From the IMG/VR virus record IMGVR_UViG_3300046694_000136, positions 1 to 64,000 of that record: a DNA stretch of 64,000 nt, one strand, 5' to 3'. Under the pieces are notes generated by a model, which worked only from the letters and a program-made list of their open reading frames with translations, was not told the DNA's origin and made no database searches. Both the position numbers and the translations under genes were made by a program. Positions 3,802-52,165 of this stretch are shown here, piece after piece; the first letter of the stretch is position 1, and every line of letters starts with the position of its first letter.

Positions 3802-3812
3802 AGGGGAGTTTC

Positions 3813-4010: not shown

Positions 4011-4055
4011 TTTCTCTTTTCGTTGTAAAACTTTGACCTATTAGGGGTATTAGTA

Positions 4056-4394: not shown

Positions 4395-4419
4395 CTCTTT
4401 GATTTATAAGGATATTTCC

Positions 4420-5040: not shown

Positions 5041-5051
5041 GGAAACCGGTC

Positions 5052-5396
5052 ATGGCCAAGAGTAAACAACAAAAGCAAGAAGAAGCACTGGCTCGTAAGC
5101 GTCAGAACTACAACCTCCAACTGGAGCGTTGGAAAGACTGTCATCCAGGTGGGGAGAGCTACGAGAAATCTGTGTTGAAAGACGGTCTCGATAAAGCCCA
5201 TAAGCGTATGGACTGGGCTCACGTAAACTGGGTTCGTTACTTGATAGAAGCCAAACTAGATCCTCTTGGTAATCCGGTTACGATGTCCGAACTCGAACAC
5301 CTGAACTCATTCCTGAAAAGTTCTGCTGCTATCAATGCGGACAGCATTGGGCGAGCTGTCGCTAGCGGCCCGGTTATTTCCAGCTACTGGGGGTAA
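5052..5396 (+). CDS. hypothetical protein (114 aa)
   Basis: AAGGA SD. Confidence 0.75.
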   Translation: MAKSKQQKQEEALARKRQNYNLQLERWKDCHPGGESYEKSVLKDGLDKAHKRMDWAHVNWVRYLIEAKLDPLGNPVTMSELEHLNSFLKSSAAINADSIGRAVASGPVISSYWG

Positions 5397-14133: not shown

Positions 14134-14583
14134 ATGACGCTCGGTATAGCGAAGGAGATGGCCGACAGACTCATAGAATTCATAATAAAAATGTTTCAGG
14201 GAGAGTCTGTTGAAGATCAGTTAACGAAAGCAATTAAAGGCATTGGCCTAGTCTTGGCAGTGTCGTTATTTGTTAACTTTTCAATGTTCTTGGCTAACCT
14301 CAATCTGCGGATGGAACTGGACGCAACGCAGGGAAGCCTTGCTAAGGTTGGCGTGCTATTCGACGGAGGGGAAAGTTCTGCACTCAGTTCGTTCGTTCGG
14401 GTTAATAACCAGACGGGGAGTCAGATAGCACTTATACAAGAACAGAACAATTGGCTAGGGCGCTATGCAATTTCGTTGACGGTAGAGAACCTGTATCTCA
14501 AACGCTCTATTGTGGTTTTGGCAGCCACTAACCGTCGGATCATAACGAATAACAACATGCTTTTACAGATGTGTCAGCCTTAA
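14134..14583 (+). CDS. single-pass membrane protein with a coiled-coil C-terminal part
   Basis: Hydrophobic GIGLVLAVSLFVNFSMFLANL; AAGGA SD. Confidence 0.7.
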   Translation: MTLGIAKEMADRLIEFIIKMFQGESVEDQLTKAIKGIGLVLAVSLFVNFSMFLANLNLRMELDATQGSLAKVGVLFDGGESSALSSFVRVNNQTGSQIALIQEQNNWLGRYAISLTVENLYLKRSIVVLAATNRRIITNNNMLLQMCQP

Positions 14584-32100: not shown

Positions 32101-34235
32101 TCCCAGACCTTATCCTCGTCCATCCGATCACGACCATACTCAGTCTTGGTCATTCCCCATTCTTTCATCAGGTCATGATAGCCGCTGTTCCGTGCGACAT
32201 CGATGTTACCTGCCAAGTCAGGAGCGAAGTTACCCAAACGGATCGCTTCATCAATGATCTTAGCCGCCAGTTCCCGACCAGACTCAGTTGGGAGGTAGGT
32301 AAGCTTGGCTTTACGCTGAACGTGGTCACCTTCCTTGAACTCATCGAAGATCTCATCCGTGATCCCGAAGTTACGTTGCATCAATCCACGGATCTCAGCA
32401 GCGTCGTTAGGGTTAAGGTGAGGAAGCTCCATGTAGTTGTACGGACTGAACCCTTTCTTACGGTCTGCCTGCTTAGCCATTTCCATAGCCAAAGCGTTAG
32501 CAGCCGATTCAGTCAGCTCCTTATTGGGATCCAACTGCTTAGAAGTACGCAATGCCATGTCAGCATAGTTACGGAAGTCGTTCTGCTGAAAGGTACGGTT
32601 AAACGCATCCGATACCTTTTGACGATGGTCGATCAACTTACCCCGAACATAGTCGTAAGACCGTGCTTTAAGGGTGTCATCACCAGTACGGATCTTTTCC
32701 AGACTCAGTTCAATCGCGCCCAGCAAAGCAGGGATTGCTTCGTTAAGGGTACGGGAGTCCTGACGACGCCAGACCTCAGCCTCAAAGTTATCCTTCAAGG
32801 TACGACGTTGCAGGTTGTACTGAGTAGCGGTGCTGGAGTACATGTCGTCCAACACAGCAGATGTACCCTTGTTGACCGCATTGCGGGCAAAGGTCTTCAT
32901 CTTCCACTCGTACTTACCCATTGGTTTACCTTCGCCAGTGTGCTGGTCCAGGTAATCCTCGTACGTCATGTCGTCGTCTTGATAGAAATCATTCTTGTTG
33001 AAATCCACCAAGGTGTTAGCCATACCTTCAAGGTTAGCCAACCCGTAGTTCGTCACGTTACCCAAGTCTTCCAGACGAATGTAAGCATCTTCTGCTTTCT
33101 TCGCTGCTTCAGGGAAACGTTTCTTAAGCTTGTCCAGCGCAGCTTTCGCTTTACCGGTACGGAGCAGTCTAGGAAGGCTGCTAATGAACATACCAGCGGC
33201 AGCGTTACCCATCATGCTACCGAAGTTGAAGTCCATCCCCTCGGTCATCTCAAGGGCCATGCGGAGGCTGCTGGCAATCTCACCAACACTACCTACTGCA
33301 TCACTGCGAGCTGATTTACCAAAACGCTCACTGAAGTAATCCGCAACGCCACCGAACTGTCCTTTAACAGTAGTGAACACCGAGTCACGAATGCTCTTCT
33401 TAGCCGCTTGACTGTGAGTGGTCTTCTCGTAATCAGACTTAGCCGAGTTAGTCGCAATAGCTTTCAACTCACGGATGATGCGGTGGTTGGAAGCTTCTTG
33501 GAACTTGTAGTACTTGCTATCGGTCAAGAACGAACGAGCAGCCAGAGTCAAACGCATGGCATCGTTACGAGCCTGTACCTTGCGCTGGTAATCCAGGATC
33601 CCTTCCAAGAGCATGTTGCTCCGGACGAGTTGCTGGTTCATGACGGTCAGGCCACCGATGGTACGACCACCAATCTCTGCCATCATACCAATCTGTGCAT
33701 TACCAACATCTACTGCTGTTTCACGCTCAGCGATAGAGTTAGCGCCCGCTTGGTCGACGACGTCATTAACTTCGCCTTCCTCAACGGTTTGCATGGAGTC
33801 AGGGGTGTCGCTACGGTTACCTCCAGTGTTCTCCCAGCTGCTGTAATCGTTCTTACTGAACTCGATTAAACCGCCGGCGATTTTATTAGGAAAGGATTTC
33901 TGAAGCCTTTCACCCGCACGTCTGGCCAGATACTGAAGGTCGTCCATCGACCCGTGGATCTCGCCCTGTAACTCTCGGGTCAGTTCACGACGCTTACGGT
34001 TCAGTTGGTCCAGTGTATTGAAGGCACGGGTCCAAGTTTTTGGAAGCACCATCTTCAGGGTATCGATACGAGCATCCGTATCCCCAACGGTCTTTTCTAC
34101 GACGCCAGACAGAAAGCCAGTAGCAAAAGATCGGATGAAACCATGCTTCTCTGCTTTATCAAAATCTGAATCGAAGTCAATATCCCCATCAAAGGGATCA
34201 TTGCCCCAATCATAGTTGCCAACGTCATCAGCCAT
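26187..34235 (-). CDS. giant tail-associated / tape-measure protein with peptidoglycan hydrolase domains (phiKZ gp181-like)
   Basis: 2682 aa; Gly-rich hydrophobic segments; duplicated D-x-Y-x-x-G-x-x-x-P-x-L repeat; GH19 motifs NYETGG and YRGRGMVQLTGRANY; M15-like HPKGLAAD and GGHIH; adjacent to vRNAP genes. Confidence 0.85.
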   Translation of the reverse strand: MADDVGNYDWGNDPFDGDIDFDSDFDKAEKHGFIRSFATGFLSGVVEKTVGDTDARIDTLKMVLPKTWTRAFNTLDQLNRKRRELTRELQGEIHGSMDDLQYLARRAGERLQKSFPNKIAGGLIEFSKNDYSSWENTGGNRSDTPDSMQTVEEGEVNDVVDQAGANSIAERETAVDVGNAQIGMMAEIGGRTIGGLTVMNQQLVRSNMLLEGILDYQRKVQARNDAMRLTLAARSFLTDSKYYKFQEASNHRIIRELKAIATNSAKSDYEKTTHSQAAKKSIRDSVFTTVKGQFGGVADYFSERFGKSARSDAVGSVGEIASSLRMALEMTEGMDFNFGSMMGNAAAGMFISSLPRLLRTGKAKAALDKLKKRFPEAAKKAEDAYIRLEDLGNVTNYGLANLEGMANTLVDFNKNDFYQDDDMTYEDYLDQHTGEGKPMGKYEWKMKTFARNAVNKGTSAVLDDMYSSTATQYNLQRRTLKDNFEAEVWRRQDSRTLNEAIPALLGAIELSLEKIRTGDDTLKARSYDYVRGKLIDHRQKVSDAFNRTFQQNDFRNYADMALRTSKQLDPNKELTESAANALAMEMAKQADRKKGFSPYNYMELPHLNPNDAAEIRGLMQRNFGITDEIFDEFKEGDHVQRKAKLTYLPTESGRELAAKIIDEAIRLGNFAPDLAGNIDVARNSGYHDLMKEWGMTKTEYGRDRMDEDKVWELFQQFVNDPNKRITRPDPQAEPYRRTRSFGNPFPTPDADVAPIGPKPTPDVTGPDAPDEFQETMKAMKASMDQVAENTKSTLLDGRSTNIGSYVDKLGERIDRTNAQLETLVTLATDRNGTLLKILEAKTVAAEDKLDETESAEVKAEKLSILDRLKQTSFKDIFNKGMDTLLKHEPLVLGGLLGGLAGMAIYNPKAAAIAGGGIAVAMAYGKFRSMALARKAMDDQDLYEEGSDIPILEAWKLRRGDYYDQLTGKAIDTWDAITGAVMDLSNNTVIGAKRLANKLFTEDNKEVFLAGLSKVRDLMVKAFKWFDPVGRIKGMMGKVAERFYQMDVYVEGESEPALYGNRFSKGHYYVKDSDGNFVSISGWNEITGAVYDKNGSVLITEEEYDAGLKTSMGLNINKLGKGAQVAKKWGLDLFNKAKEHAMPWAKKAMDKGKGALKADYTPIVSAVDRIYNLLLSHWGYEGYVPPTDPDAPIPAPVMGPPAPGPFPTPESDITVPVNPEAMDGTPKESEEDLVARRKLLKLRRQTPAPDFVGPMPFKTPTPEGGPEAEPPKPIITPADAPDDAPPRTWIFKRDYDDMKKRFPLMADEVEKYRKRYEDRQKEMNGEEADKPADTNDPDRLNSLADKKNKEYMKKEEEVQDAIIEIAKNFGFGEQRGQEQKERPKGLFAMIGSMIGGIATGIGQLTSFFTSGILWRGLSTLFSFASFGLRTFPKLLTGIGAIGSGIVALIKAGGIGGGPGGVLGGLGGGLGKVGLGLGISSAANAAMEAGYIDKDSGMGQTLDYAGNAVTAIGVGQMGLTALKWMGIGGGGTVGSMAMAGLRALPAVIGGLLSAPVAVGAAIVGGTMYKSWQLVKAMQPRQFLIRMTQYGLSDPNGDLAEKLLQIEEMLTEYVVIGNGKASLSQSAPIDKVVQMLTGTIPDKKGVSDALSWFNGRFKPVFMTYMACLDVVKIKSLKDYDKLRNGDVYRVAKQTHEAISLLVPFPYTITAKVDPENPILERETTIIRVNNYLTELKENSDTADRLAGVEPLAAVETVKGASVEALQQEKVRLETKLRDPNAEFEGWFGRSKAESRLNEVQGEIGKLNEAYKAGTAIAEIFVKDMLPDGRPIDMLTAIRLAAYGNDENIPWRVEAVLKLERYCEQYFKVNGDTAEFTGQIGDLFPQFKDAFRTEPGYAPTWCLWFKDRFLPVLTNYMIQVAKYRKGRPGVVWKSLSVTARYEIAKALVDSKVEVGAGLITSIWYVRAAPFKDGSSPDRSDKVDKMLQILSEASVTARLKDPEMEAGKTNAQTWANAISPHKTGGGFTEKYANTQDASQFKTGADAMRGGQFSTNGSPAGNISGLNGAFKTPENQFGFQPMSGDSSTDHLDMSGVTAQQGKDSGVSVPKKLAEQLVIREMMKQGFTDPRAIAEMLALTNYETGGYKRTVENMKYSTPEQLMKVFKEVRSIDQAKQLIAMGEVEIANTVYGGGKGASLGNKDPGDGYKYRGRGMVQLTGRANYEKYGKELGIDLVNKPELLSTDPNVMAQVAVAFFKNSKLLRGISEDGDFGKAAAGLNGGNALPDMQKRYALYMDYLKQIQEKTLGADDKFLAENSGSQTPTEMYGSTGPSEMKTPASYGGGATGAPAYTGGPAGGGGGAYSGTPQGGSDFANYGTEGNYTNTGAGSGLILKSEETTGGGAHHPGLEALCKIIQSRVPGFNRFTALNDRYHVEKGSKGLHPKGLAADFTLTMGAQGSQRAVAIVTEIMRGAGLSPSEYSVINEYMVKTAIGTGGHIHAGFKTPGAAEKFLQASGGTQPNGQDTTGAGGGMVQPTQQPGGSAPTGEPAAEAPAAQPQVPQQPRTMPTPPPPPVGEPKAPEGVGEPDDEFQGKPNLTGLPLPKDPRGPQPQATPEGYDANQRRNAAAGHDGSVVNDLLSGLKDIVGQNKKSDDEVKQLLAILVKTAQEGNTIAKSSSGGGDKDGYVSMN

Positions 34236-34264
34236 GTTGGTTATTCTCTTTAAAGGATAAAGTA

Positions 34265-35890
34265 ATGAAGCCCACTAACTTAACACTCTTAGACCCCCGG
34301 ACGATTGTCCCGGGTGTCTTTAAACCTATTACGTCCACTGACGCGTTCGAAGGGATGACCCAGAACCTCAACGACGACGGTTTGTATTCCATTGAAATCT
34401 TTGGGAAAGTAGGGAGTAAGGAGCGGGATAAGACTGAAGCTTACATTGACGTAAAGCTCCCTATCTTCAACCCTACTTACCTCAAAGCCCTCATTTTGGT
34501 GAAAGCACTTTACCAAGGAATTTTGAGAGGTGCGGAATACGCCGTCTTCGACGAGGAGAAGGGTGATTTCATAAAATCGAACATCCTCGAAGGGGAGTCC
34601 GGTTTTTCTTTCTTTGTCCGTAAATTAAAGGAGATTGTTTTCAGCACGACTGCTTCGTATAAGCGTGGTCAGCGTGTAAAACTCTTGATTGATTTCCGTG
34701 ACATTGCGATGACTGACAAGGTGTTGGTTATCCCTGCTGGTCTGCGTGATATTCAGTTCGGGGCTAACGGTGCTCCTACTGAACCGGAGATCACAGAGCT
34801 CTATCGCGCACTGATCTTCCGTACTCGGGTAATCCTCGGTGGTAAGGGTGATTCCGAGAACCCTCTCTACGACAGCGTCCGGTGGGGTGTGCAGACTGCG
34901 TTCAACGATATCGACCAATACCTCTTCGACCTGTTACAAGGCAAGGGCGGTATTCTCCAGCGTCGTATGTCGACACGTGGTGTGGTAGGCGGTACTCGTA
35001 ACGTTATTACTGCTCGTAAAGTCAGCCGTAAGAACCTGAAGGCTCCAATGCTGGTTTCACCTAACTCGGTGGACATGGGCCTCTTCCAAGGCTTGCTGAA
35101 CTATCAGTACGTCTGTGCTCACGGTGTCATGAACGAATACCTAACGAACGTCTTCACTATTGGTAACCAAAGCGCCAAGTTGGTGAACAAGAAGACATTG
35201 GAGTTTGAATACGTTGAAGTAGCCCCGGCTATCGTGGACAAGTGGACCACCTTTACTGGGATCAACAAACTCTTCAACGGTTTCGCTGACGCTTCGATTC
35301 GTAACAAAGAGATTGTTATTGACCATCGGTTCCTCATGCTGGTTTACGATGACGGTACTGATGTGTGTGTTCTGCATGACATCAACGATCTCCCTGAAGG
35401 TAAGGACAAGAAGTTCGTTAAACCTATTACCTACATGGAGTTCTTCTACCTCAGCTGCTACAAAGCGATTGGGGATCAGGTGAGTCAGCAGACACGTTAC
35501 CCGATTATTGGTATTGGTTCGATCTTCCCTGCTGCGGTGAACCTTATCACAACCGAAGGTGCTGGCTCCCGGACTATCCGTGATCCGTACGACTGGTCTG
35601 AGCGTGATGTGTGTCACTCGTACCCGTCTCGTCGTGATAAGCAGGACTTCTTCGACGCAATGTCGGTTGACCCGTCTCGTGAAGCCGGCCTCGACTCTGA
35701 CCACGACGGCGACCAATTGAACAGTAACTCGGTCTGTGCAGAAGACAGTAAGGAACAAGTTAAGGAGTTGTTCGGTAAGCGTTCATACTACATCAGCGGG
35801 ACTGGACGTTTCCTGTACGACCCTATTAACGAACCCATTCAATTCATGTTTAAATCTGCTACCAGTGGGTTAGAAGGACTTGAGCAATGA
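34265..35890 (+). CDS. virion RNA polymerase beta' middle (catalytic) subunit (phiKZ gp180-like)
   Basis: VLVIPAGLRD, TRYP and the catalytic DxDGD loop (DSDHDGD). Confidence 0.9.
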   Translation: MKPTNLTLLDPRTIVPGVFKPITSTDAFEGMTQNLNDDGLYSIEIFGKVGSKERDKTEAYIDVKLPIFNPTYLKALILVKALYQGILRGAEYAVFDEEKGDFIKSNILEGESGFSFFVRKLKEIVFSTTASYKRGQRVKLLIDFRDIAMTDKVLVIPAGLRDIQFGANGAPTEPEITELYRALIFRTRVILGGKGDSENPLYDSVRWGVQTAFNDIDQYLFDLLQGKGGILQRRMSTRGVVGGTRNVITARKVSRKNLKAPMLVSPNSVDMGLFQGLLNYQYVCAHGVMNEYLTNVFTIGNQSAKLVNKKTLEFEYVEVAPAIVDKWTTFTGINKLFNGFADASIRNKEIVIDHRFLMLVYDDGTDVCVLHDINDLPEGKDKKFVKPITYMEFFYLSCYKAIGDQVSQQTRYPIIGIGSIFPAAVNLITTEGAGSRTIRDPYDWSERDVCHSYPSRRDKQDFFDAMSVDPSREAGLDSDHDGDQLNSNSVCAEDSKEQVKELFGKRSYYISGTGRFLYDPINEPIQFMFKSATSGLEGLEQ

Positions 35891-38800
35891 CGCCTATTCT
35901 TTATAACGACTTCTTCCGGACTATGGTCCTACGGAAGAAGCAGGATCTGGTTAATCCAGTTTTCCATGGCATCAGTGAAGTCAACTTACCGAAAAACAGC
36001 TTGCTGCAATTCGTTCCTAAGAACCCAGCTGATTACGGCCCAAGTAACAGTGAAGCGTTCATCAGCAACTATCCGGCGGAGATCTACATTGACTTCGTGC
36101 AGGACCTGCTGCATCCAGTAATGGGTAATGGTCGGGTCGCTACCTTCGATCTGAAGAAAGCGATCAGTAACTATCGTGCCGGTCATTACAACTACAACTG
36201 GACTCGTGACATCACCACGGTGTACGAGAAGGAACGTGTACTGGTTGTCCGTAACTACGGCCTGATTCCTCATCGGTTCATTTATCGTGCAAGTCTGTAC
36301 GTGAACTATGAGAAGTACTACAACCAGATGGCGATGGTTATTGAGGGGATCAACAAGGAAGCCGAACGTGGGAACCGTCACCAGTTCCTGCGCATTGAGC
36401 TTCCACTGAACCTGCCTAGTTTTACGGAGTTGTTCGACGACTACCGTTTGCTGATTAAGAGTTTTAAAGACGGGTTGCCAGTATTGAGCCCGCAAGTGAT
36501 CGGCGCTACTAAAGCCGAGAACACTTATTGGTTACTAGACCTGTTGGGTTGGTTGTTGGGTCAGTCTGAGTTTACCCTGTTTGGGAAAATCAGCGAGAAG
36601 GCCTTGGGGGATCTGCACTTCATCTTCACTTACCAAAGCAAGGCGCTGGTGTTGAAAGCCAGTCTTGTGAAGGAGTGGCTGGATGAGGTTGGTTTGAAAC
36701 CCGGTCAAGAGTTTAAAACTCCCCTGCTGGAGCTGGAAGGACTGAAGAGTACCAAGCGGATGAACGTTGTGAAACGTTTCTACTTGGTCTTCCTTACCTT
36801 AACGAGAGACCTGGTTCCTGAGAAAGAAATTGCTAAAGAGGAACAAGGAAATGTCGGAATTGGAGGAGCCGGTGAAACCGGTAACCCGTCGGATTCCAAA
36901 GTGGATCCAGGAACGGCGGGAGAAACGTCGACAGGGCAACGGCAAGGCAACGGAAAAGACGGGAAGCTTCCTGGCTCGGGCCAGCCCCCTGACGCTGGTA
37001 ATGATTCTGGTAATATCCTTGACATTTTCGCTAATGATGCGAAGAACGATCGAGGACTTCCTGAAGCCGAAGGAAGTGCGGGAACGGGAAGTATTGATGA
37101 AGGTGCTGCGGAATGGTCAGCCGAAGTAGCTGACGAGCTGCTGGAGGTTGAAGCTGCCGGCGGTGAGATCAATACCAGCAAGGTGGCTTTCCCTACTCCT
37201 GAGAGCGGCGTGAAGCTGTTGCTGGCTGAACGGGCTCGTGACGGTAAAGTGACTGTTAACGAGCAAGAGTTCTTCATGCGCAAAGGAACGCGCTACCAGC
37301 ACATCGAGATGCCTAACGGTCAAACCTTCTGGGAGTACATTCAAGTCTCTCAAGAAGAACTCGATGGCTTGGCGAAGGAATCGAAGATCGAGGCTAACAT
37401 CGCCACGGTTACCGACGAGAGCATGATGTACAGTCGGGCGACTGAACTCAAGAACGGTTACGCCGCTAAGTTCTTGCAGAAAGATATCGGCTCCATGGCA
37501 CTGGCTTTCCAGAACGCCGGCTTTGCAATGAACGACTACCGAGTTGAAAACCACAGCAGTGTGGAAGGTAGTTACAACGTTCACAGCATTCAGTTCCACC
37601 ACGTTAACGGTGATCAGACAACTATCCATCCACGCTTCCCTGTGGTGAATGACGATGGCAGTTTCATCATTGACAGCGTTAAGCAGCACTTCCAGTTGCA
37701 GCGTAAGGAACGAGTCTTCCGCAAGATCTCCTCGTGGGAAGTAGCACTGACTACCTACTACGACCGTAAGCTGATGATTACCAGAAGTCGAAAGGTTGTC
37801 GACGATCTGGAGAAGTTCATGGTTAAACAGATTGCCCTGCAAAGCAAGGTTAAGAAGTACACCTTCAGTAAGGGCGGTAAGTTTGACCGTAGTTACAAAG
37901 CCCCTCGTATCTACTCCATGTTGGCTAAGCAGTACAAGTCCATCACGGTTGGTGATACGGTTCTGGATTTCAACGTAGCTGCACTGCTGGAGAAACATCC
38001 AGACTTCAAGAAGTACACCAAGGAGGATCGCTTCCTGATTGGTGTGAGTGGTGATGAACCACTGACCATCGATGACTACGGCAACCTCTACAAAGGGGAT
38101 ACCAGCACTGGTACCGTAGAAAGCCTGTTGGGTGTAGACCTGACCAAGGCTCCGTTGGAACATGCACTTATCAACATCAGTGGGTATCAATTCCCGTTGG
38201 GCGTTGTACTGTGCTACTACTTCGGCATTGATGAACTGTTGAAGGTTATTAAGGCCACGACTCGTAGCGTTCCTATCACTACCCGTCTGAAACTGGAAAG
38301 CGATGAGTTCGCGATCAAGTTCAACGACCAGTATCTGGTAATGAGTCGTCGTGAGAAACTGACCACCATGATTTTTGGTGGCATGCCTAAACTAACCAAC
38401 ATTAGTAACTTCAGTAAGTCGGACTTGAACAACAACACCATCTGGACCGCATTGATGGGCGATGCTCGGGTACGTCCTGCTCAGTTCCAAGAGATGAACA
38501 ACCTTTATAAGCTGTTCCTTGACCCGATCGCTCGGGAAGAGTTGCGGAAGTACAAGTTGCCTGACTCGTTCCACTATCTGCTGATCGAGGCTGCTAAGGT
38601 CCTAGGGACTGACTACAGCCGTCATGAGGTGGAGATTGAGGAACAACGCTTCGTGGGCTATGAGCGTTTCGCAGGGCTGTTCTATCGGGAGTTGTGTAAG
38701 GCTAACCGTCAGTTCCAGAACAAGGGTACTGGCCGTCGTCACAAACTGGACTTCAACCCGGATGCCGTTATCATCGCTATTGGTGAAGACAACTCCGGTC

Positions 38801-40221
38801 AACAGGTGGAAGAGGTTAACCCTGTTCACCAAGTGAAGGATCAGGAGGAGGTTACCTTTGGTGGTACTGGTGGTCGTAACGAGATTACAGTGGTTAAGCG
38901 AGCTCGTACCCAACTGGTCAGCTATCAGGGTCGTATCTCTGAGGCGAACAAGGACAGTGGCAAAGTTGGCTTCGTAACGTACACCAGTTCTGATCCAGCG
39001 GTTATCGACTACCGTGGGAACATGGACCTGAACAAGCCACGGACTCCTTGTGGTGATGGTTCGGTTACAATGAACCTGATGTACGGCGGTCGTCACGATG
39101 ATGCAAAACGTGCGGTGTTTACTTCGACGCAGTGGAGTCAGGCGATCAGTGCTAGCAACTATGGCATTGTGTCTCTCCGTACCGGTTATGAAAACGTTCT
39201 CCCTCACCGGACTTCTGAGCTGTACAGTAAGGTTGCGAAAGCTAACGGTACTGTTACTGAAGTCAAAGACGACGAGTTGGTAATTACCTACGACGATAAG
39301 TCTGTGGACCGTTACCCGCTGGGCTTGTACGTCGGCGAAGCAAGTGGTGAATACCATCGACACACTCGTGTTACCGATATGAAAGTCGGTGATAGCTTCA
39401 AGAAGGGTGACGTTGTTGGTTGGAACGACAACTGGTTCATGCGCGATCACTTCTGCCCGGGTCAAGTGGGTCTGAAAGGTGGGTTCATGGTTCGCGTAGG
39501 TCTGTTCGAGGACCAAGACACCTATGAAGACTCCATCGCAATCAGCAGTCGGATTGCGAATGAAACACTGATCCCGTATATCAAACCTACCCCCTTCACG
39601 ATGAACATTGGGTTTAACCTGGTCATGAGGGCTAAAGTAGGGGACGAGATCGAGCAAGACTCGATTTTATGCGATATTGAAGAACCGCATTTGGTGGAGG
39701 GAAATCATGATGCTTCGTTTGTTGCTGAAGTGAACAAGCTGGGCATCAAGCAAGTCAGAGCGACACACCACGGGAAGATTGTGGATATCCGGGTACAGTA
39801 CAACGGTGCTCTGGAAACCATGTCGGAATCGGTACGTCAGTTCGTTGCTAAAGCGAACAAGTTGACTAAGCGTCAGAACCAGATCGTCGGGAAGAATGTT
39901 GAAACTAACGCTGTGTCTGGTGTCTTTAACGTTAACCGTCCGAGCATCCAGCCCGATACCCTCTTGGTGATTTTCTTCGTAGAGTCCCTTGATGGTCGTA
40001 CCCGTGCTGACAAGTTCGTATTCGGTAACCAGCTCAAAGCCACGGCAGGTCGAATCATGACCAAGAAGATGTTCACCGAGGACAAGCAAGAGATCGATGC
40101 GAAAACGAGCTTTAAGGCACCTTTCAACCGGATGGTGATTTCCTTCCGCAACCGACTCATTGTGAACGAATGGTCTTTCCAATTCACGAAGCGAGCGATC
40201 GCCGTTTATCGAGGTAATTAA
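35887..40221 (+). CDS. virion RNA polymerase beta N-terminal subunit (phiKZ gp178-like)
   Basis: 1444 aa; RpoB-like NPVHQVKDQEEVTFGGTGGR, DDAKRAVFTSTQ, YEDSIAIS and ADKFVFGNQLKA. Confidence 0.9.
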   Translation: MTPILYNDFFRTMVLRKKQDLVNPVFHGISEVNLPKNSLLQFVPKNPADYGPSNSEAFISNYPAEIYIDFVQDLLHPVMGNGRVATFDLKKAISNYRAGHYNYNWTRDITTVYEKERVLVVRNYGLIPHRFIYRASLYVNYEKYYNQMAMVIEGINKEAERGNRHQFLRIELPLNLPSFTELFDDYRLLIKSFKDGLPVLSPQVIGATKAENTYWLLDLLGWLLGQSEFTLFGKISEKALGDLHFIFTYQSKALVLKASLVKEWLDEVGLKPGQEFKTPLLELEGLKSTKRMNVVKRFYLVFLTLTRDLVPEKEIAKEEQGNVGIGGAGETGNPSDSKVDPGTAGETSTGQRQGNGKDGKLPGSGQPPDAGNDSGNILDIFANDAKNDRGLPEAEGSAGTGSIDEGAAEWSAEVADELLEVEAAGGEINTSKVAFPTPESGVKLLLAERARDGKVTVNEQEFFMRKGTRYQHIEMPNGQTFWEYIQVSQEELDGLAKESKIEANIATVTDESMMYSRATELKNGYAAKFLQKDIGSMALAFQNAGFAMNDYRVENHSSVEGSYNVHSIQFHHVNGDQTTIHPRFPVVNDDGSFIIDSVKQHFQLQRKERVFRKISSWEVALTTYYDRKLMITRSRKVVDDLEKFMVKQIALQSKVKKYTFSKGGKFDRSYKAPRIYSMLAKQYKSITVGDTVLDFNVAALLEKHPDFKKYTKEDRFLIGVSGDEPLTIDDYGNLYKGDTSTGTVESLLGVDLTKAPLEHALINISGYQFPLGVVLCYYFGIDELLKVIKATTRSVPITTRLKLESDEFAIKFNDQYLVMSRREKLTTMIFGGMPKLTNISNFSKSDLNNNTIWTALMGDARVRPAQFQEMNNLYKLFLDPIAREELRKYKLPDSFHYLLIEAAKVLGTDYSRHEVEIEEQRFVGYERFAGLFYRELCKANRQFQNKGTGRRHKLDFNPDAVIIAIGEDNSGQQVEEVNPVHQVKDQEEVTFGGTGGRNEITVVKRARTQLVSYQGRISEANKDSGKVGFVTYTSSDPAVIDYRGNMDLNKPRTPCGDGSVTMNLMYGGRHDDAKRAVFTSTQWSQAISASNYGIVSLRTGYENVLPHRTSELYSKVAKANGTVTEVKDDELVITYDDKSVDRYPLGLYVGEASGEYHRHTRVTDMKVGDSFKKGDVVGWNDNWFMRDHFCPGQVGLKGGFMVRVGLFEDQDTYEDSIAISSRIANETLIPYIKPTPFTMNIGFNLVMRAKVGDEIEQDSILCDIEEPHLVEGNHDASFVAEVNKLGIKQVRATHHGKIVDIRVQYNGALETMSESVRQFVAKANKLTKRQNQIVGKNVETNAVSGVFNVNRPSIQPDTLLVIFFVESLDGRTRADKFVFGNQLKATAGRIMTKKMFTEDKQEIDAKTSFKAPFNRMVISFRNRLIVNEWSFQFTKRAIAVYRGN
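36851..37129 (+). CDS. putative overprinted single-pass membrane protein (92 aa) in the +1 frame of vRNAP betaN
   Basis: AGAGGA SD 8 nt before ATG; 20-residue uncharged stretch (residues 44-63); host-frame Gly codons switch to GGA over this ORF. Confidence 0.6.
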   Translation: MSELEEPVKPVTRRIPKWIQERREKRRQGNGKATEKTGSFLARASPLTLVMILVISLTFSLMMRRTIEDFLKPKEVREREVLMKVLRNGQPK

Positions 40222-40224
40222 GTT

Positions 40225-41139
40225 ATGGACTTCCGTACTCAGAACGGTTTCAAGGACACTCAGGTGATCCTCAAGGAACTGAACCTGTACGGCGGTGATA
40301 TCGACGGCATCTGGGGGTCTAAGTCGGCCTCCGGTGTTGTTGAACTCATGCGCACGTATGCCTCATTCATTGGTCGTGGTATTTTCACTGCGGCCAGCAT
40401 GCCAACCAAAGCCTCGGCTGATGGCAAGAACATTGTTGAACAGCTCCAGCTGTACATGAAAGACCTGGGTGTTTACCTGACCAGTGTTGACGGTACTTGG
40501 GGTAAGGGATCGTTGGGTGGCCTTGAGCTGCTTGCTTCACATTACCGCCGGACCAACAAACTCCCAACCTACGACATGGCTTGGAGCAAGAAGGTCTCGA
40601 AGGAATTCCGTGCAAAGATTTACGCATGGTGTTCTAAGCAGGGTTACGACCCGATCGTTGCCAGTTGGTTGATGGCTTGCATGCACTTCGAGTCGGGCGG
40701 TACTTTCAGTCCGAGCAAACAGAACAACGGTGGGTCTAACTTCTTCGGTCTTATCCAGTTCGGTGAAGATGCTGCTAAAGATCTGGGCACTACCTTGTCT
40801 AAGTTGATTGCCATGTCTCAACTGGAACAGCTCGACTACGTGTTCAAGTACTTCGAGATGTGGGCGAAGCGTGGCAAGAAGTCCACTCAGTTGGAAGACT
40901 TCTACTTGACAATCTTCTACCCGGCTGCTGTTGGTAAGAAGGCTGATACGGCACTGTTCCGTGAACGTACCGCTGAAAACCAAAAGCTCGTCGGTGACTT
41001 CGAAGCCAAAGCGTTCATCCAGAACAAGGGCTTCGATCGGGACAAGGATCGCATCATCACCATTGGTGAGATCTGCACCACTATCTACAACACTTATTAC
41101 ACAGGCATGGATCCAGTCAACCGCCTGCAACTTTCTTAA
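40225..41139 (+). CDS. modular endolysin: two PG-binding repeats plus a lytic transglycosylase domain (EL188-like)
   Basis: IDGIWG and VDGTWG repeats; catalytic HFES; GLIQF; QLDYVFKYF. Confidence 0.9.
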   Translation: MDFRTQNGFKDTQVILKELNLYGGDIDGIWGSKSASGVVELMRTYASFIGRGIFTAASMPTKASADGKNIVEQLQLYMKDLGVYLTSVDGTWGKGSLGGLELLASHYRRTNKLPTYDMAWSKKVSKEFRAKIYAWCSKQGYDPIVASWLMACMHFESGGTFSPSKQNNGGSNFFGLIQFGEDAAKDLGTTLSKLIAMSQLEQLDYVFKYFEMWAKRGKKSTQLEDFYLTIFYPAAVGKKADTALFRERTAENQKLVGDFEAKAFIQNKGFDRDKDRIITIGEICTTIYNTYYTGMDPVNRLQLS

Positions 41140-41151
41140 GGACGTCTCCTC

Positions 41152-41334
41152 ATGACCCCTACCCAGATCAACAACGTGATCACGATCGCCAACTCCGTGG
41201 CCTTCATCCGCAAGACCATCGAAAAGGTCGGGCTGGAATACATCGCGCCGCTGGATCCTGCTGAGCAATCGGAAAAGATCAGCAAAGCCCTCAACCATAA
41301 GGTTCAATCCTCCCTGATTAAGGATCCTCAATAA
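41152..41334 (+). CDS. small hypothetical protein (60 aa)
   Basis: AAGGA SD; TAATG overlap with the next gene. Confidence 0.7.
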   Translation: MTPTQINNVITIANSVAFIRKTIEKVGLEYIAPLDPAEQSEKISKALNHKVQSSLIKDPQ

Positions 41335-42911
41335 TGCTCAGTAAAGACGATTTGATTCTCGCGCAACTGATCTCTAGCGGTCTGCCCGAGAACATTGAGG
41401 TGAAAGCCTCCGGCATCATTGCAGGGTTGAACGAAGTCAGTTACGCAGTTAGCCCGTACGCACCGACTGCTTTGATTGACCAAGCGATGGAAGTCACCCG
41501 CAACCTGACGCCCCACAACGACGTCATGGAACTGGCCACCACTGAAATGGCGAAAGTCGTTCGTGGTGCTTTCGACATGGTCAAGACCTACGGCGTTCCG
41601 ATGGCTCTGGCTATCGCTGACGGCGTGAGCTGTCTGTACTCGATGGAATCGGTTCTCCGCACCATTCGTTCGGAACTGGACATCAAGTACATCAATGTTG
41701 ACGATCCACTGTTCAACTTGGGTATCTACCCGGTACAAGTGGCCAACAAGTCACTGTCTTTCGAGTCGGTCAACTTCGGCATGCTGGAACGCCTGAAGTT
41801 CGGTTACGTCTCGGACTCCGACCTGGTCGAGTGGGTCAACAGCAAACACCCTGAGATCGTTGCTGTGCTGGAAGACAAATCCACCAGTACCTACACCGCT
41901 CTCTGGAACATGACCAGTCCTGACGGCATGCGCGGCGTCTTCAAGGTAATGGAAAACGGCCAGATCAACTTCGCCGACATCCGTACCATCGACGTTCCGT
42001 TGCTGATGAAGATGTTCGTCATCGCTTCGAAGATGTTCATGACCGACAAGCCAGTGCCTTGGCTGGAAGAAGGTTCGCTGGAAGACTACCGTGAGTTCAC
42101 CAGTTTGATCTGGAACGGTATCTCCCGCTACCTGATCGGTCTGAAGCATATCACCGGCCTGTACCGTGCCCGTGAGATGGTGATCACTGACGTTACTCCG
42201 GTACGTTACAAAGAGATCACTCCTCACGAAGCGCTGGGCGTTAAAGTGAATGTGGTTGAAGGCAAGGTACTGGTGTTCTACACCGGTGCAATCATGCGCG
42301 CTATCACCGAGAGCGGTACTGCCATCAGCGACGTAACGGTGGCTTACCTGTACTCCCGTGTTAAAGGCAAGAGCTTCAGCCTGAGCGAGCTGGCCAACAA
42401 CAAGCTGCGTGTAAGCGAACTGATGTCCCAGTACGTTGACGAAGTTTCGGGCGTTATCCACAACCGCGCCAAGGATGTCTTCTGTGAAAGTGCAGCGATC
42501 GCTATCGCTCAGTTCATTGATGGCAACCAAGCCGCCAAGGAAGCGCTGTACACCTCGATCGGCGAGAAGGGTAGCATGACTGCCACTGTCGTCCGTCAAC
42601 GTCTGGGAGCGGCTATCAGCAAGCTCTACAGCATCTACAGTTCCCGTGTCGGTAAGAACGACGAACTGGTTGCTGAAGCCGACGGCGGCAGTACTCAGAC
42701 TCTGATCGGTGAACGTAAGAAAGAGTGCATCAACATCATTCTTTCCACTGACATCGTTCCGGTGTTCCTGAACCTGCTGGGTTGCAACATGGCTGCTGCG
42801 ATCATCGCCGCTACCTACGTGACTCAGGACAAGGTCTTCACTGCCGTGGATGAGCGTAAGCAACTCCACTGCGCCTTGATTCAGGTAATGGCAAACCTTT
42901 CCCTGGAGTAA
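41334..42911 (+). CDS. virion head protein (phiKZ gp177-like by synteny)
   Basis: 525 aa; strong codon bias; lies between the vRNAP betaN and beta'C genes. Confidence 0.6.
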   Translation: MLSKDDLILAQLISSGLPENIEVKASGIIAGLNEVSYAVSPYAPTALIDQAMEVTRNLTPHNDVMELATTEMAKVVRGAFDMVKTYGVPMALAIADGVSCLYSMESVLRTIRSELDIKYINVDDPLFNLGIYPVQVANKSLSFESVNFGMLERLKFGYVSDSDLVEWVNSKHPEIVAVLEDKSTSTYTALWNMTSPDGMRGVFKVMENGQINFADIRTIDVPLLMKMFVIASKMFMTDKPVPWLEEGSLEDYREFTSLIWNGISRYLIGLKHITGLYRAREMVITDVTPVRYKEITPHEALGVKVNVVEGKVLVFYTGAIMRAITESGTAISDVTVAYLYSRVKGKSFSLSELANNKLRVSELMSQYVDEVSGVIHNRAKDVFCESAAIAIAQFIDGNQAAKEALYTSIGEKGSMTATVVRQRLGAAISKLYSIYSSRVGKNDELVAEADGGSTQTLIGERKKECINIILSTDIVPVFLNLLGCNMAAAIIAATYVTQDKVFTAVDERKQLHCALIQVMANLSLE

Positions 42912-42914
42912 GGT

Positions 42915-43640
42915 ATGGACGTTGGCTCTCTGGTCAGGGACCGAGCCAAGATCAAGAAAGCTTATACGGTTCAAGATGACTTCTCAGTTATTGCGAACCG
43001 TACGCTCGAAGTACACATTCCTCGACGGTTTGTGGAGAACGGGTTTACTACTCTCGATAACCATGTGTCGTCTACAGTGGTAATGGGCATTGTGATACCG
43101 GGGGAGTGCTACACTCCTCTGATTGCTTTGGCTGACTTGATTCTGGCTCCGTCTGGTATTCGTGATGTAATGATTAATGGAGTGCCGTACGTTATTCTGG
43201 AGTTTGAAGAAGGGGACACGTTGTTCGAAACCCTTCACTACATTCAAGACCCCAACAAGAACTACGGTTACTTCATGGAGTTTAACTTCTACGCTAAACT
43301 CCCTTGGTACATGAGCGATGATGATTTCACGTCCTTGTATGACCATGCAGCCCAGCAGTGTGGTGCTGAAATGGGGGGTACTCCTGAGCATATGCGCGTT
43401 TATGCGTCGTTGCAGATGCGAGACCCTGACAACTTGGACAACCAGTACCGTAACAGTAAAGCAATGTTGGAAGGACGCCCTGCGGTTATTGTAGGGCTTA
43501 ATAACGGTGCCATGTTGATTGATGGTACTATTCCGAAGTTGACGGGTGGTTATCTGCAAGACAACACCATTGCAGCGATCGTTAATCCGGATACCAAAGT
43601 CACTGACCTCGAGAAGATTCTCAAAGGAGTTCCGGGATGA
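42915..43640 (+). CDS. virion RNA polymerase beta' C-terminal subunit (phiKZ gp176-like)
   Basis: HMRVYASLQMR...IVGLNNGAM...DLEKILKG resembles RpoC HIEVIVRQMLR...LLGITKASL...LKENVIVG; directly precedes the protease. Confidence 0.7.
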   Translation: MDVGSLVRDRAKIKKAYTVQDDFSVIANRTLEVHIPRRFVENGFTTLDNHVSSTVVMGIVIPGECYTPLIALADLILAPSGIRDVMINGVPYVILEFEEGDTLFETLHYIQDPNKNYGYFMEFNFYAKLPWYMSDDDFTSLYDHAAQQCGAEMGGTPEHMRVYASLQMRDPDNLDNQYRNSKAMLEGRPAVIVGLNNGAMLIDGTIPKLTGGYLQDNTIAAIVNPDTKVTDLEKILKGVPG

Positions 43641-44494
43641 GTCAAATTATTACACTGGGGAACACTATCCTCGGTCCGGGTAAACGGGGGATGCTCAAGC
43701 CTCTCTCCGATGGCTCGGGTTACTATCGCATGCCAGGTGGTGGGTTCAACATTCCTAACCGTCACGGGGTCACGTATCCCATGAACGATTACCTGAAGGA
43801 GTGCATGGGGCAGGATAGCGATTTCGAACGCCGTATTAAAGACGGTCAGATGTTCTCGGAATTGGATCACCCTAAGCCTTACTACAACTTGGTTATTGGC
43901 GGGCAGATTGTCCGTAAAGAGATCACCGAGCTGTGGGAGTGGGTGAACCGTCTGAAGATGATCGACATGGACAACATTGCCGGTCACATCCGCAAGATCA
44001 TCTGGGATACCACCAAAGGTATGTCGGGTGCTGTACTGTGGGACGTCGAGATCTGCCCATTCGGCGATAAGAAGTGGTTCCTGGAAGAAAGCCTGCCAAA
44101 CCCTGACATCAACACCGCTCTGAGTGTTCGTACAGTAACCACGCCAATGAAAACGGGTGATACTACTCGTAACGTGGAATACTGGAGCACTGTGGACGTT
44201 GTTCCTGAGCAAGGCGTGCTGCGTGCCTGCAAACACCTCAGTGCCGGCATGGAAAGCTTCCTCACCTCGTTCCGCCCAAGCGATATCGCTCAGGACGTCT
44301 ACGAGACCACTGTGGACGAGCTGATCTACATCTGCGACAAGAAGATCAACAACCCGGCAGTTAAAGAGCAGTACGCCGGTAACGAGAGCTTCAACCAAGT
44401 CGTCAAAATGGTTGAGCACTTCAAGAACACCGTTGGTCGCGGTCGTGCTCCTGCTGTACTGGTTAACGCCAACAGCCTGGGTGCTTTCCGTTAA
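43637..44494 (+). CDS. prohead (head maturation) protease (phiKZ gp175 / T4 gp21-like)
   Basis: SELDHP, AGHI and ALSVRT motifs; C-terminal AGME and AGNE possible autocleavage sites. Confidence 0.8.
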   Translation: MSQIITLGNTILGPGKRGMLKPLSDGSGYYRMPGGGFNIPNRHGVTYPMNDYLKECMGQDSDFERRIKDGQMFSELDHPKPYYNLVIGGQIVRKEITELWEWVNRLKMIDMDNIAGHIRKIIWDTTKGMSGAVLWDVEICPFGDKKWFLEESLPNPDINTALSVRTVTTPMKTGDTTRNVEYWSTVDVVPEQGVLRACKHLSAGMESFLTSFRPSDIAQDVYETTVDELIYICDKKINNPAVKEQYAGNESFNQVVKMVEHFKNTVGRGRAPAVLVNANSLGAFR

Positions 44495-44509
44495 GTAACC
44501 TACTTACCT

Positions 44510-44551
44510 CCTAGAGTCGGTCACCCGACTCTAGGGGTTGAGTGTTCTTTT
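44510..44551 (+). terminator. Rho-independent terminator
   Basis: 11-bp stem CCTAGAGTCGG/CCGACTCTAGG with a downstream T-rich run. Confidence 0.75.
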
Positions 44552-44564
44552 GCTGCAATTTCAT

Positions 44565-44572
44565 TATATTGC
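44565..44572 (+). promoter_or_regulatory. TATATTGC, one-mismatch early promoter motif
   Basis: Between the terminator and the first accessory gene (44600). Confidence 0.45.
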
Positions 44573-44599
44573 GAATAATCACATTTAAAGGATTTCTTC

Positions 44600-45277
44600 A
44601 TGTCTCCAGCTATCAGCAAGCGTCTCAACTTCATCTCTGGTGTTATGCGTCTTCGTGGTGCTTTCCACGCCGTTAACACTGTAGCGGCGTTGCATGAAGC
44701 CTCGAAGCAGGAATGGTTGCGCTGCATCAATCCCGATGACGACACCAACTACATCACTGAATTCCAACTGGATGGTCGTAAGACTGACGCGGTCATCAAT
44801 TACACCACCAAGCTGGCTGCGATCTACATGAACGCTACCGGCGCTCTCCCGGGCACTCTGTCGAAAGAAACGCTGGCCTCCGACAACGTTATCACCATGG
44901 CCATCATTCGTCGTCTGACTGGTATCCAGATCAAGAACAACGAAGAAATGTTCACGCACGTCGCTACCCGTCTGCTGGGCATCGACAGTGCGCTGGTGAA
45001 AGCCGGTATGACCACTGACGAAGTGCGTTACTCGTTGCTGGTTACTTATCTGGTGGACGCACTGGGTGAAGAGTTCACCGAAGACAGTCTGGCAACCCTG
45101 AGCGGTTACATCGTGAAGTTCGGTGTCAACGGTCAGCTCACCGACAAGTTCTTCACCCGCCTCCTCGAAGAAGGCGAGCAGTTCTACGCCGATCAGCCGG
45201 ACAGCATCAGCGACGCTATCGACGTTATCGATCTGCTGGTTGACCGTATTGCCGGTGACAGCAAGTTCGTAGGCTAA
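44600..45277 (+). CDS. hypothetical protein (225 aa)
   Basis: AAAGGA SD; strong codon bias. Confidence 0.85.
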   Translation: MSPAISKRLNFISGVMRLRGAFHAVNTVAALHEASKQEWLRCINPDDDTNYITEFQLDGRKTDAVINYTTKLAAIYMNATGALPGTLSKETLASDNVITMAIIRRLTGIQIKNNEEMFTHVATRLLGIDSALVKAGMTTDEVRYSLLVTYLVDALGEEFTEDSLATLSGYIVKFGVNGQLTDKFFTRLLEEGEQFYADQPDSISDAIDVIDLLVDRIAGDSKFVG

Positions 45278-45290
45278 ATATTTTCAAGCC

Positions 45291-45298
45291 TACATTAC
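45291..45298 (+). promoter_or_regulatory. TACATTAC, one-mismatch early promoter motif
   Basis: Preceded by CC like the other copies; immediately upstream of a structured leader. Confidence 0.5.
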
Positions 45299-45299
45299 T

Positions 45300-45370
45300 A
45301 GGGTGACCAAGATCGGAGCCATCCGACAAGGGAATACACCAATCCCTTGGCTTACGCTTTAGGTCATCCT
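45300..45370 (+). ncRNA. putative structured 5' leader or small RNA (multi-branch junction)
   Basis: 9-bp closing stem 45300-08/45362-70 enclosing abutting 5-bp and 7-bp hairpins. Confidence 0.4.
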
Positions 45371-45431
45371 TTGTTACTCGCGGAATTCTCAAAGAAGAAT
45401 AACCGTTACATTTACCTTATGGAGTTTCACA

Positions 45432-45887
45432 ATGACTACCAAGAAAAACCTGAACAAAGAATTCGGCGAATCGATGGACCTGGGTATCAAGAACCTGGTG
45501 GACAACCACAAGTTCCACAAGGCCACCAACCACGTCGAATTCGACACCAGCAAACTGGAAATGCCAGAAGGCGTCACTCTCGAATCCATTGGTGTTGTCA
45601 GCGACTACATCAATAACCTGGCCCTGCAAGCTGAATCGGCCACCAGCCAGATCGCCCGTACCCTGCACGGCGAGAACAAAGATCTGACCACTCTGGACAG
45701 TACCCTGAAACTGGGCAATGCTCTGGACATCAACTCCACCCACCATCTGCGTCAACAAGTGGGCGAAGAGTTCATCTACGGCGGTCACACCACCGCGGTC
45801 GATTTCCACCACAACCAAGTGCAGGCTGATTGGTTGAGCAGCAACCGTGCTGCCGATCAAGACCTGGCCGCTAAGCTGTTTGGTTAA
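45432..45887 (+). CDS. highly expressed hypothetical protein, possibly of a jumbo-phage DNA-binding family
   Basis: GGAG SD; very strong codon bias; the MPEGVT-x-ES motif recalls a conserved jumbo-phage family (low certainty). Confidence 0.7.
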   Translation: MTTKKNLNKEFGESMDLGIKNLVDNHKFHKATNHVEFDTSKLEMPEGVTLESIGVVSDYINNLALQAESATSQIARTLHGENKDLTTLDSTLKLGNALDINSTHHLRQQVGEEFIYGGHTTAVDFHHNQVQADWLSSNRAADQDLAAKLFG

Positions 45888-51748: not shown

Positions 51749-52165
51749 ATGTACGACAGTTTGTATGAAATCGCCATGAACCTTATCTTTTTAGCCGTGT
51801 ACGCCGCGCTTGGTCTAGTGTTGCTGTACAGGTACTTAGCTTCCAAGGATTTGGACTATACACTTGTAAAGATCACGAGCGGCTACGTCTTCAGCTTTAA
51901 AGTAGGAATATTCGCAGGGAAGCTCAAGCTTATTCGACAACGTGGCTGTGCAGTACCGCGTTTCGTTAAGCACCTCGACGGTTGGGAAATAGTCTTTCCC
52001 GTCTTCTACACCGACAACCAGATCAATTCTTTCATAATGCGAAATAACCCACCCGGAAGTAAGACAGCGTCTCACGCTAAAGACTTAGAAGTCTACCGGG
52101 AAGTCGTTATCAAGCGGAATGAAAACCTTGTCTGTAAGGCAGGGACGATCTGCAAATTACGCTGA
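51749..52165 (+). CDS. membrane-anchored hypothetical protein (138 aa)
   Basis: Hydrophobic LIFLAVYAALGLVLLY near the N-terminus; GGAG SD. Confidence 0.75.
   Translation: MYDSLYEIAMNLIFLAVYAALGLVLLYRYLASKDLDYTLVKITSGYVFSFKVGIFAGKLKLIRQRGCAVPRFVKHLDGWEIVFPVFYTDNQINSFIMRNNPPGSKTASHAKDLEVYREVVIKRNENLVCKAGTICKLR

Follow-up and report, generated by a model that had tools for sequence, protein, structure and literature searches.

Within the 64,000-nucleotide stretch of IMG/VR virus record IMGVR_UViG_3300046694_000136 analysed here (positions 1 to 64,000; hereafter the window), a gene for a virion RNA polymerase beta-like subunit is followed on a tightly packed + strand gene train by a gene for an EL188-type endolysin. 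Inside the polymerase gene, in the +1 frame and across the disordered acidic linker that separates the N-terminal domain of the protein from its polymerase core, lies a second open reading frame of 92 codons whose predicted product has a basic N-terminus, a single hydrophobic segment and a charged tail (Table 1). The original prediction held that selection acts on this +1 frame, and that a genuine nested gene for a membrane protein, perhaps a holin, antiholin or lysis regulator, therefore occupies the linker. All of the sequence features on which that proposal was based are present, and its central inference is supported by the comparative evidence set out below, whereas the proposed function remains a hypothesis.

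Table 1. Features of the polymerase-endolysin locus and other elements of the window considered in the text (window coordinates).
Feature	Coordinates	Strand	Description
Shine-Dalgarno-like motif	36837..36842	+	AGAGGA, followed by 8 nt before the nested ATG
Nested +1-frame gene	36851..37129	+	92 codons plus TAG (37127-37129); ATG at 36851
Basic N-terminal motif	36893..36931	+	IPKWIQERREKRR, residues 15-27; part of the predicted helix 17-33 (AlphaFold2); family consensus W-L-x-E-R-R-E; host frame highly variable here
Single transmembrane segment (predicted)	36983..37042	+	ASPLTLVMILVISLTFSLMM, residues 45-64; ends in SLTFS with the family's only invariant residue, S60; AlphaFold2 helix at residues 46-71 with the model's highest pLDDT
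Short C-terminal charged helix (predicted)	37070..37114	+	Residues 74-88; family motif E-x-R-E-x-E ... (R/K)NG
Host gene, virion RNA polymerase beta-like subunit	35887..40221	+	1444 aa; PHROG 3148, E=0; 61% identity to EL-like phages
Host-frame linker	36850..37128	+	Residues 322-414, rich in G/S/N/D/E; overprinted by the nested gene; contains the conserved host motif ILDIF
EL188-type endolysin gene	40225..41139	+	304 aa; next gene after the host gene; 50% identity to EL gp188, E=1e-107; no hydrophobic N-terminus; EL188 has measured muralytic activity (PMC3352856); a similar-sized gene (about 286-328 aa), annotated as or alignable to a peptidoglycan hydrolase in most, occupies the same position in EL, RisingSun, Miami, N1M2, pEt-SU, AH04 and D6
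Small membrane protein of unknown function	14134-14583		
Small membrane protein of unknown function	51749-52165		
Antisense ORF	36780-37283	antisense	167 aa
Lipobox hit	17516-17707	antisense	Only hit of the window's lipobox scan; implausible

An open alternative frame is, by itself, poor evidence for a gene. A hydrophilic linker lacks T at the second codon position, so its +1 frame may be open and rich in K, R and E by chance, whilst T-ending codons can produce a hydrophobic stretch from which nothing is translated. When the host protein was kept and its codons redrawn, the +1 frame remained open in 70% of synonymous shuffles of the window sequence, and in 6-82% of trials across lineages. Likewise, the upstream motif and the ATG carry little weight alone, as the Glu and Asp codons of the host frame readily generate GAGGA and GATG. 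The hydrophobic stretch, in contrast, is unusual: its hydropathy maximum of 2.46 over 17 residues was reached in only 0.4% of shuffles (P=0.004), and the stretch was significant at P<=0.01 in 10 of 15 lineages. Codon usage is similarly difficult to attribute to composition. The original prediction had counted GGA in 11 of 21 Gly codons of the polymerase frame at 36841-37140 and in 0 of 26 at 38761-39480, and this count is exact; in the rest of the gene GGA accounts for 3 of 90. Its further claim that the alternative frame uses the preferred codons of this phage also holds, with the nested frame scoring 0.21 bits per codon and a relative synonymous score of 0.08, against 0.32+-0.25 and 0.17+-0.18 for true genes of the window, and none of 79 gene chunks read in their own +1 frame reaching the nested value.

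The nested ORF is widely conserved. It is present in all 42 relatives examined of the EL, RisingSun, Vibrio, Klebsiella, Aeromonas and Shewanella jumbo-phage branch (35 IMG/VR loci and 7 further isolate phages), down to about 30% host-protein identity, as an ORF of 80-122 aa with an ATG, a stop and one predicted transmembrane helix. The stop is TAG in 22 of 24 representatives, and GAGG-type motifs lie within about 5-14 nt upstream of the ATG in about 18 of 24. It is absent from phiKZ-type phages, and the acidic linkers of phiKZ, 201phi2-1, Goslar and SPN3US give no such ORF.

Substitution patterns provide evidence that the nested frame is under selection. Inside the ORF, variable sites at host codon positions 1, 2 and 3 number 46, 23 and 16 of 89 each, compared with 54, 26 and 200 upstream and 128, 90 and 534 downstream. 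Thus, the most variable position becomes the third codon position of the nested frame within the ORF and returns to that of the host frame just outside it. The same flip occurs in six separate clades, with chi-square P from 1.5e-5 to 2.8e-16, and its boundaries match the ORF, with +1-frame periodicity confined to 36874-37098. In the overlap, dN/dS is 0.14-0.20 in the nested frame, whose dS of 0.39-0.89 is close to the flank dS of 0.62-0.96, whereas apparent host-frame dN/dS is 0.95-3.9 here and 0.05-0.08 in the rest of the gene. The antisense ORF was rejected as the selected frame, as its second codon position would then be the most variable. Nor is the host frame simply abandoned: it stays open through the overlap in all relatives, although its chance openness given the nested peptide is only 0-0.019 per lineage. 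At deep divergence the nested peptide is only slightly better conserved than the host frame (28.5% against 26.7% identity, and higher in 67 of 105 pairs), a marginal difference that we do not use as main evidence. A by-product of composition cannot explain a flip confined to the ORF in six clades, the low +1-frame dN/dS, the hydrophobic stretch or the gene-like codon usage, and is very unlikely. We conclude with high confidence that this is a real protein-coding gene created by overprinting, although its translation in vivo is inferred from sequence alone.

The +1 frame might alternatively be reached by ribosomal frameshifting from the polymerase frame, giving a membrane-anchored fusion of the polymerase N-terminal domain rather than an independent 92-aa protein. 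The +1 frame is open for up to 19 codons upstream of the ATG in some lineages, and such a fusion would fit the alternative suggestion of the original prediction that the product is a membrane tether co-produced with the virion RNA polymerase (vRNAP). However, in one locus (L025, on the same contig as locus L003) a +1-frame stop directly precedes the ATG, an ATG is present in all lineages and most have a GAGG-type motif upstream, and no shared slippery site was noticed in the alignment inspected. A frameshift fusion is therefore highly unlikely, although a tether in the form of an independent protein is not excluded.

The product is very probably a single-pass inner-membrane protein. AlphaFold2 gave three helices at modest confidence (pLDDT 68), and the presence of just one transmembrane segment holds in all 24 family representatives. 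N-terminal net charge is +2 to +11 and C-terminal net charge is -2 to +5 across these representatives, which favours an N-in/C-out layout, though in the window's clade both sides are net positive. The strongly basic N-terminal helix is predicted to be cytoplasmic, and the C-terminal part of about 28 residues periplasmic. Searches for homologues gave no indication of function. There was no Pfam or PHROG hit at E<=1, and nothing was found in the ESM Atlas or in a word-indexed search of 5.8 billion proteins. A profile search of 1.84 billion representatives returned six significant hits, all short proteins of the same family, of which the one traced is the nested ORF on a contig that ends inside the polymerase gene, together with two weak hits to long proteins that were not pursued.

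Gene context nevertheless makes a role in lysis more plausible. The nested gene lies 3.1 kb upstream of an endolysin without a signal sequence, rather than adjacent to it, and there is no terminator-like site above shuffle expectation between them, although a promoter and terminator scan of 33500-45500 found fewer sites than in shuffles and was uninformative. The order of vRNAP then hydrolase is conserved in every ORF-bearing phage whose downstream region was read, spanning seven genera, and the six lineages checked that lack that hydrolase downstream also lack the nested ORF. Conversely, Ea35-70 has a hydrolase-like gene after its polymerase gene but no nested transmembrane ORF, and the co-distribution could reflect a single ancestral event. 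The original prediction that no holin is evident in the window is only partly right, since two other small membrane proteins of unknown function are encoded there, and the window covers only 64 kb of a genome of ~234 kb. The papers describing Miami and ZPAH34 do not name a holin.

The closest parallel is with gp142 of phiKZ, an experimentally demonstrated class III (‘IIIB’) holin (PMC12894885). Both come from nucleus-forming jumbo phages of the same broad group, both have one transmembrane domain, with an N-in/C-out layout, a soluble cytoplasmic N-terminal part and a short periplasmic tail of about 28 residues (all three only predicted here), and both serve, or would serve, a soluble modular transglycosylase-type endolysin (KZ144 and EL188). 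That homologues of gp142 are detectable only in phiKZ-type Pseudomonas phages also makes a holin role here more plausible. However, there is no detectable homology between the two proteins (hhalign probability 0.2%). Furthermore, gp142 is a free-standing gene of 131 aa beside the endolysin, spanins and a regulator, whereas the gene described here is embedded in another, encodes a much shorter and very basic N-terminal part, and has no identified spanins or regulator nearby. Holin T of T4, the class III prototype (as described in PMC12894885), similarly has one transmembrane domain, N-in/C-out, and a short cytoplasmic N-terminus, but carries a large periplasmic regulatory domain and shows no homology.

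Embedded lysis genes are already known from other phages. The o-spanin genes Rz1 inside Rz of lambda and 18.7 inside 18.5 of T7 are +1-frame embedded genes of double-stranded DNA phages, conserved as dual-coding regions (PMC6139136), but o-spanins are outer-membrane lipoproteins with a lipobox cysteine, whereas the nested product contains no cysteine and has a transmembrane helix instead, and its host gene encodes an RNA polymerase subunit rather than a partner spanin. A lipobox scan of the window found nothing at this locus. An i-spanin, with an N-terminal transmembrane domain and a long periplasmic coiled coil, is equally unsupported, because the transmembrane domain here is central and only 28 residues follow it; the spanin-like role also raised in the original prediction thus fails. 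Gene E of phiX174, which probably likewise lies in the +1 frame of an essential structural gene (D), appears to differ in having an N-terminal transmembrane domain and in acting, through MraY, in a phage without an endolysin; in the present case an endolysin is encoded downstream, and a genome of over 200 kb is under no obvious pressure to compress.

Taken together, we tentatively infer that the protein acts in lysis as a class III-like holin, or as a holin-timing partner, giving the signal-less endolysin access to the cell wall, a reading that is no better than even. A real membrane protein with a different task is just as likely, and might act in virion or vRNAP packaging at the membrane, in the early membrane-bound infection vesicle of nucleus-forming phages, in superinfection exclusion or in another interaction with the host membrane. 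All evidence for a real gene applies equally to this alternative; the surrounding genes are virion and head-maturation genes, holin homology is lacking, other membrane-protein candidates for a holin exist in the window, and Ea35-70 carries the hydrolase without the ORF. Yet none of these roles has specific support, whilst the predicted topology, size, late gene context and position relative to the endolysin are what one would expect of a holin. It is possible, though somewhat less likely than not, that a previously unrecognised holin family was born de novo by overprinting on this linker and has long been fixed across at least ten genera of nucleus-forming jumbo phages infecting Pseudomonas, Erwinia, Klebsiella, Vibrio, Aeromonas, Edwardsiella and Shewanella, where it would tie lysis timing to late expression of the vRNAP-endolysin gene train and fill the holin gap in these phages.

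We found no annotation or paper describing this gene: none of the 40 GenBank records listed annotates it, and literature searches returned nothing on an embedded gene in jumbo-phage polymerase genes. Overprinted genes are classic in tiny viruses, where genome space is scarce, but a long-conserved dual-coding segment inside an essential polymerase subunit of phages of 200-250 kb shows that gene birth by overprinting also happens, and persists, where space is not limiting, and that standard annotation misses such genes. The gene adds a conserved, predicted membrane protein to a phage group used for therapy and for studies of the phage nucleus, and warns that ‘silent’ edits or codon optimisation in this linker are not silent. 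It also offers a concrete candidate for the unidentified holin of the EL-type phages, whose endolysin EL188 is already well studied.

The long open reading frame that hosts the nested gene matches the jumbo-phage virion RNA polymerase beta (vRNAP beta) family (PHROG 3148, E=0) and is 61% identical to the Pseudomonas phage EL group, although no phage record in the collection matched it at the DNA level with megablast. Two IMG/VR contigs, one of them 234,503 bp long, carry an identical vRNAP beta protein. The nested product has a basic N-terminus, one 20-residue hydrophobic segment at residues 45-64 and a charged tail, whereas the host frame across this span (residues 322-414) is a linker rich in G/S/N/D/E. 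The glycine codon bias noted in the original prediction was counted exactly: GGA makes up 11 of 21 glycine codons inside the region and 0 of 26 in the comparison stretch of the same gene, and we found 3 of 90 in the rest of the gene.

Features of the window and of two related phages, with their coordinates
Feature	Coordinates	Strand	Description
vRNAP beta-like gene (host gene)	35887-40221	+	1444 aa; one uninterrupted ORF
Nested +1-frame ORF	36851-37129	+	ATG to TAG, 92 residues; AGAGGA 8 nt upstream
Nested-frame substitution pattern	36874-37098		Extent of the switch in 15-codon blocks
Host-frame motif	36964-37010		G-N-I-L-D-I-F
Nested stop site	37124-37129		TAG formed by host-frame Val codon GTA and a G-starting codon
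Antisense ORF	36780-37283	antisense	167 aa
Long antisense ORFs in the polymerase gene, among others	37117-38190 and 38602-39657	-	357 and 351 aa
Packed genes	34265-44494	+	Overlaps or gaps of a few bases
Endolysin homolog	40225-41139	+	Next gene after the polymerase gene; 50% identical to EL gp188
Small ORF after the endolysin	41152-41334	+	60 aa, no membrane segment; PHROG 17945
Small membrane protein	14134-14583	+	149 aa; one transmembrane segment at residues 36-54, long C-terminal part; PHROG 18283, unknown function
Small membrane protein	51749-52165	+	138 aa; N-terminal transmembrane segment at residues 8-26; weak PHROG 35362 hit, function unknown
Phage EL (locus L009), HNH endonuclease gene and split beta-like gene	3619-4890 and 8688-9146		gp185 between the gp184 and gp186 polymerase genes; beta-like gene split into gp186 and gp187
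Erwinia phage Ea35-70 (locus L019), gene after the polymerase gene	4906-5166		Hydrolase-like; motif SYDLAWSAKV

An open +1 frame is not surprising on its own and could be a by-product of composition, as a stop in this frame requires T at host codon position 2, which hydrophilic linkers rarely have. When the host protein was kept and its codons were redrawn from the gene's own usage, the +1 frame stayed open in 70% of trials for the window and in 6-82% across 15 lineages, and ATG and GAGGA also arise easily from Asp and Glu codons. The hydrophobic stretch is different, in that it needs a run of T at host position 3, and was reached in only 0.4% of shuffles for the window and in 1% or fewer for 10 of 15 lineages.

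Conservation of the ORF extends well beyond close relatives. Three IMG/VR relatives at 87-89% host-protein identity keep the ATG and the frame, and two of them keep the same stop. Phage EL has a homologous, unannotated +1 ORF, as do RisingSun, Vibrio pTD1, Photobacterium PDCC-1, Klebsiella Miami and N1M2, Aeromonas ZPAH34 and D6, Shewanella FishSpeaker, Edwardsiella pEt-SU and Erwinia AH04. A profile-guided scan of IMG/VR returned 36 loci, of which 35 were surveyed, and every one of these has an 80-122 aa +1 ORF with an ATG and one transmembrane segment. Among 24 non-redundant representatives, about 18 have a GAGG-type motif within about 5-14 nt upstream of the ATG, and the stop is TAG in 22; its formation from a conserved host-frame Val codon, in the window and at the same site in relatives (loci L023-L058), implies a synonymous constraint on that codon. 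The alignment shows the family motifs W-L-x-E-R-R-E, L-A-R, S-L-(M/T)-F-S with an invariant serine, E-x-R-E-x-E and (R/K)-N-G. In contrast, the acidic linkers of phiKZ-like OMKO1, 201phi2-1, Goslar, Ea35-70, RTH11, RSL2 and SPN3US contain no such ORF. The ORF is therefore a trait of one branch, rather than a general by-product of acidic linkers.

The decisive evidence comes from selection. In a codon alignment of the window and its three close relatives, variable columns by host codon position 1/2/3 numbered 54/26/200 upstream and 128/90/534 downstream, but 46/23/16 inside the ORF. Host position 1 is position 3 of the nested frame and host position 3 is its position 2, and thus the pattern inside is the normal 3>1>2 order of a coding gene read in the +1 frame. 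The same flip appeared in five other clades analysed separately, with chi-square P ranging from 1.5e-5 to 2.8e-16. Nei-Gojobori estimates in the overlap gave dN/dS of 0.14-0.20 in the nested frame, with dS of 0.39-0.89 compared to 0.62-0.96 in the flanks, whereas the host frame showed an apparent dN/dS of 0.95-3.9, against 0.05-0.08 in the rest of the gene. Codon usage agrees: the nested frame scores like real genes and above all 79 control chunks read in their +1 frame, while the host frame in the overlap falls in the lowest 5% of true-frame chunks. The 167-aa antisense ORF spanning the region cannot explain the signal, because the most variable position would be its second codon position; the very long antisense ORFs inside the polymerase gene we read as a side effect of codon bias.

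Both frames count. When the nested peptide was kept and its codons were redrawn, the host frame stayed open in 0-1.9% of trials per lineage, yet it is open in every relative. The polymerase is therefore read through the overlap, and this is true dual coding. A frameshift fusion, in which the +1 frame would be reached from the polymerase frame, is unlikely, as in one relative a +1 stop directly precedes the ATG. The G-N-I-L-D-I-F motif is the only well-conserved part of the host-frame linker, and looser forms are visible even in phiKZ (NLIDIG) and 201phi2-1 (DLDILQ).

Structure prediction by AlphaFold2 with the family alignment gave three helices, at residues 17-33, 46-71 and 74-88, with a mean pLDDT of 68 that was highest over the transmembrane helix. 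In all 24 representatives the N-terminal part is net positive (+2 to +11) and always at least as positive as the C-terminal part (-2 to +5), which favours an N-in/C-out topology. There is no cysteine, so the protein is not an o-spanin, and only 28 residues follow the membrane helix, so it is not an i-spanin.

No terminator-like site in the packed genes around the nested ORF exceeds shuffle expectation. EL gp188, to which the product of the gene after the polymerase gene is related, is the endolysin EL188, with measured muralytic activity (PMC3352856); the window's protein has no signal or membrane segment, so it needs a holin. A similar-sized gene (about 286-328 aa) follows the polymerase gene in EL, RisingSun, Miami, N1M2, pEt-SU, AH04 and D6, all seven of which carry the nested ORF. 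Most records annotate it as a peptidoglycan hydrolase, transglycosylase or peptidase, or it carries a peptidoglycan-binding domain, although N1M2 and pEt-SU label it otherwise. In these same seven phages a 53-65 aa gene occupies the position of the window's small ORF after the endolysin, whereas in phiKZ (gp177.1) and 201phi2-1 (gp272) a gene of that size directly follows the polymerase gene. In ZPAH34 the authors list RNA polymerase ORFs 36-37 and endolysin ORF 38 together (PMC10321303). phiKZ, 201phi2-1, RTH11, RSL2, Goslar and SPN3US lack both the hydrolase gene at this position and the nested ORF. Ea35-70 is an exception, in that the gene after its polymerase gene looks like the same peptidoglycan hydrolase family but its longer linker has no transmembrane +1 ORF; the hydrolase may have been placed there before the nested gene arose.

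In phiKZ the holin is now known: gp142 has one N-in/C-out transmembrane domain, a cytoplasmic N-terminal domain and a small periplasmic tail (PMC12894885), and its homologs are detectable only in phiKZ-type Pseudomonas phages. The nested protein has, as far as can be predicted, the same gross layout, but no homology to gp142. Together, these points make a holin or lysis-timing role the best single guess, albeit a tentative one. The co-distribution of ORF and hydrolase may reflect one ancestral event, and even within the window, which is only part of the genome, there are two other small membrane proteins. Of these, the 149-aa protein, whose homologs occur only in EL-like phages and RisingSun/Joad, is an alternative holin or i-spanin candidate, although no overlapping lipoprotein ORF was found. 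A membrane role unrelated to lysis is about equally likely.

None of the 40 listed GenBank records annotates a second gene under this region, and literature searches found no description of it. A profile of the family searched against 1.84 billion representative proteins found six short proteins of the same family, of which the one traced (P0001) lies on a contig that ends inside the polymerase gene; a word-indexed search found nothing, and no clear free-standing homolog was found, leaving aside two weak profile hits to long proteins that were not pursued. Embedded +1-frame genes for small membrane proteins in phages are known from phiX174 E and lambda Rz1, whereas the protein family, the host gene and the jumbo-phage setting are new. 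The gene most likely arose de novo on the linker in the ancestor of this branch, with its transmembrane part overlying the one conserved host motif of the linker, ILDIF.
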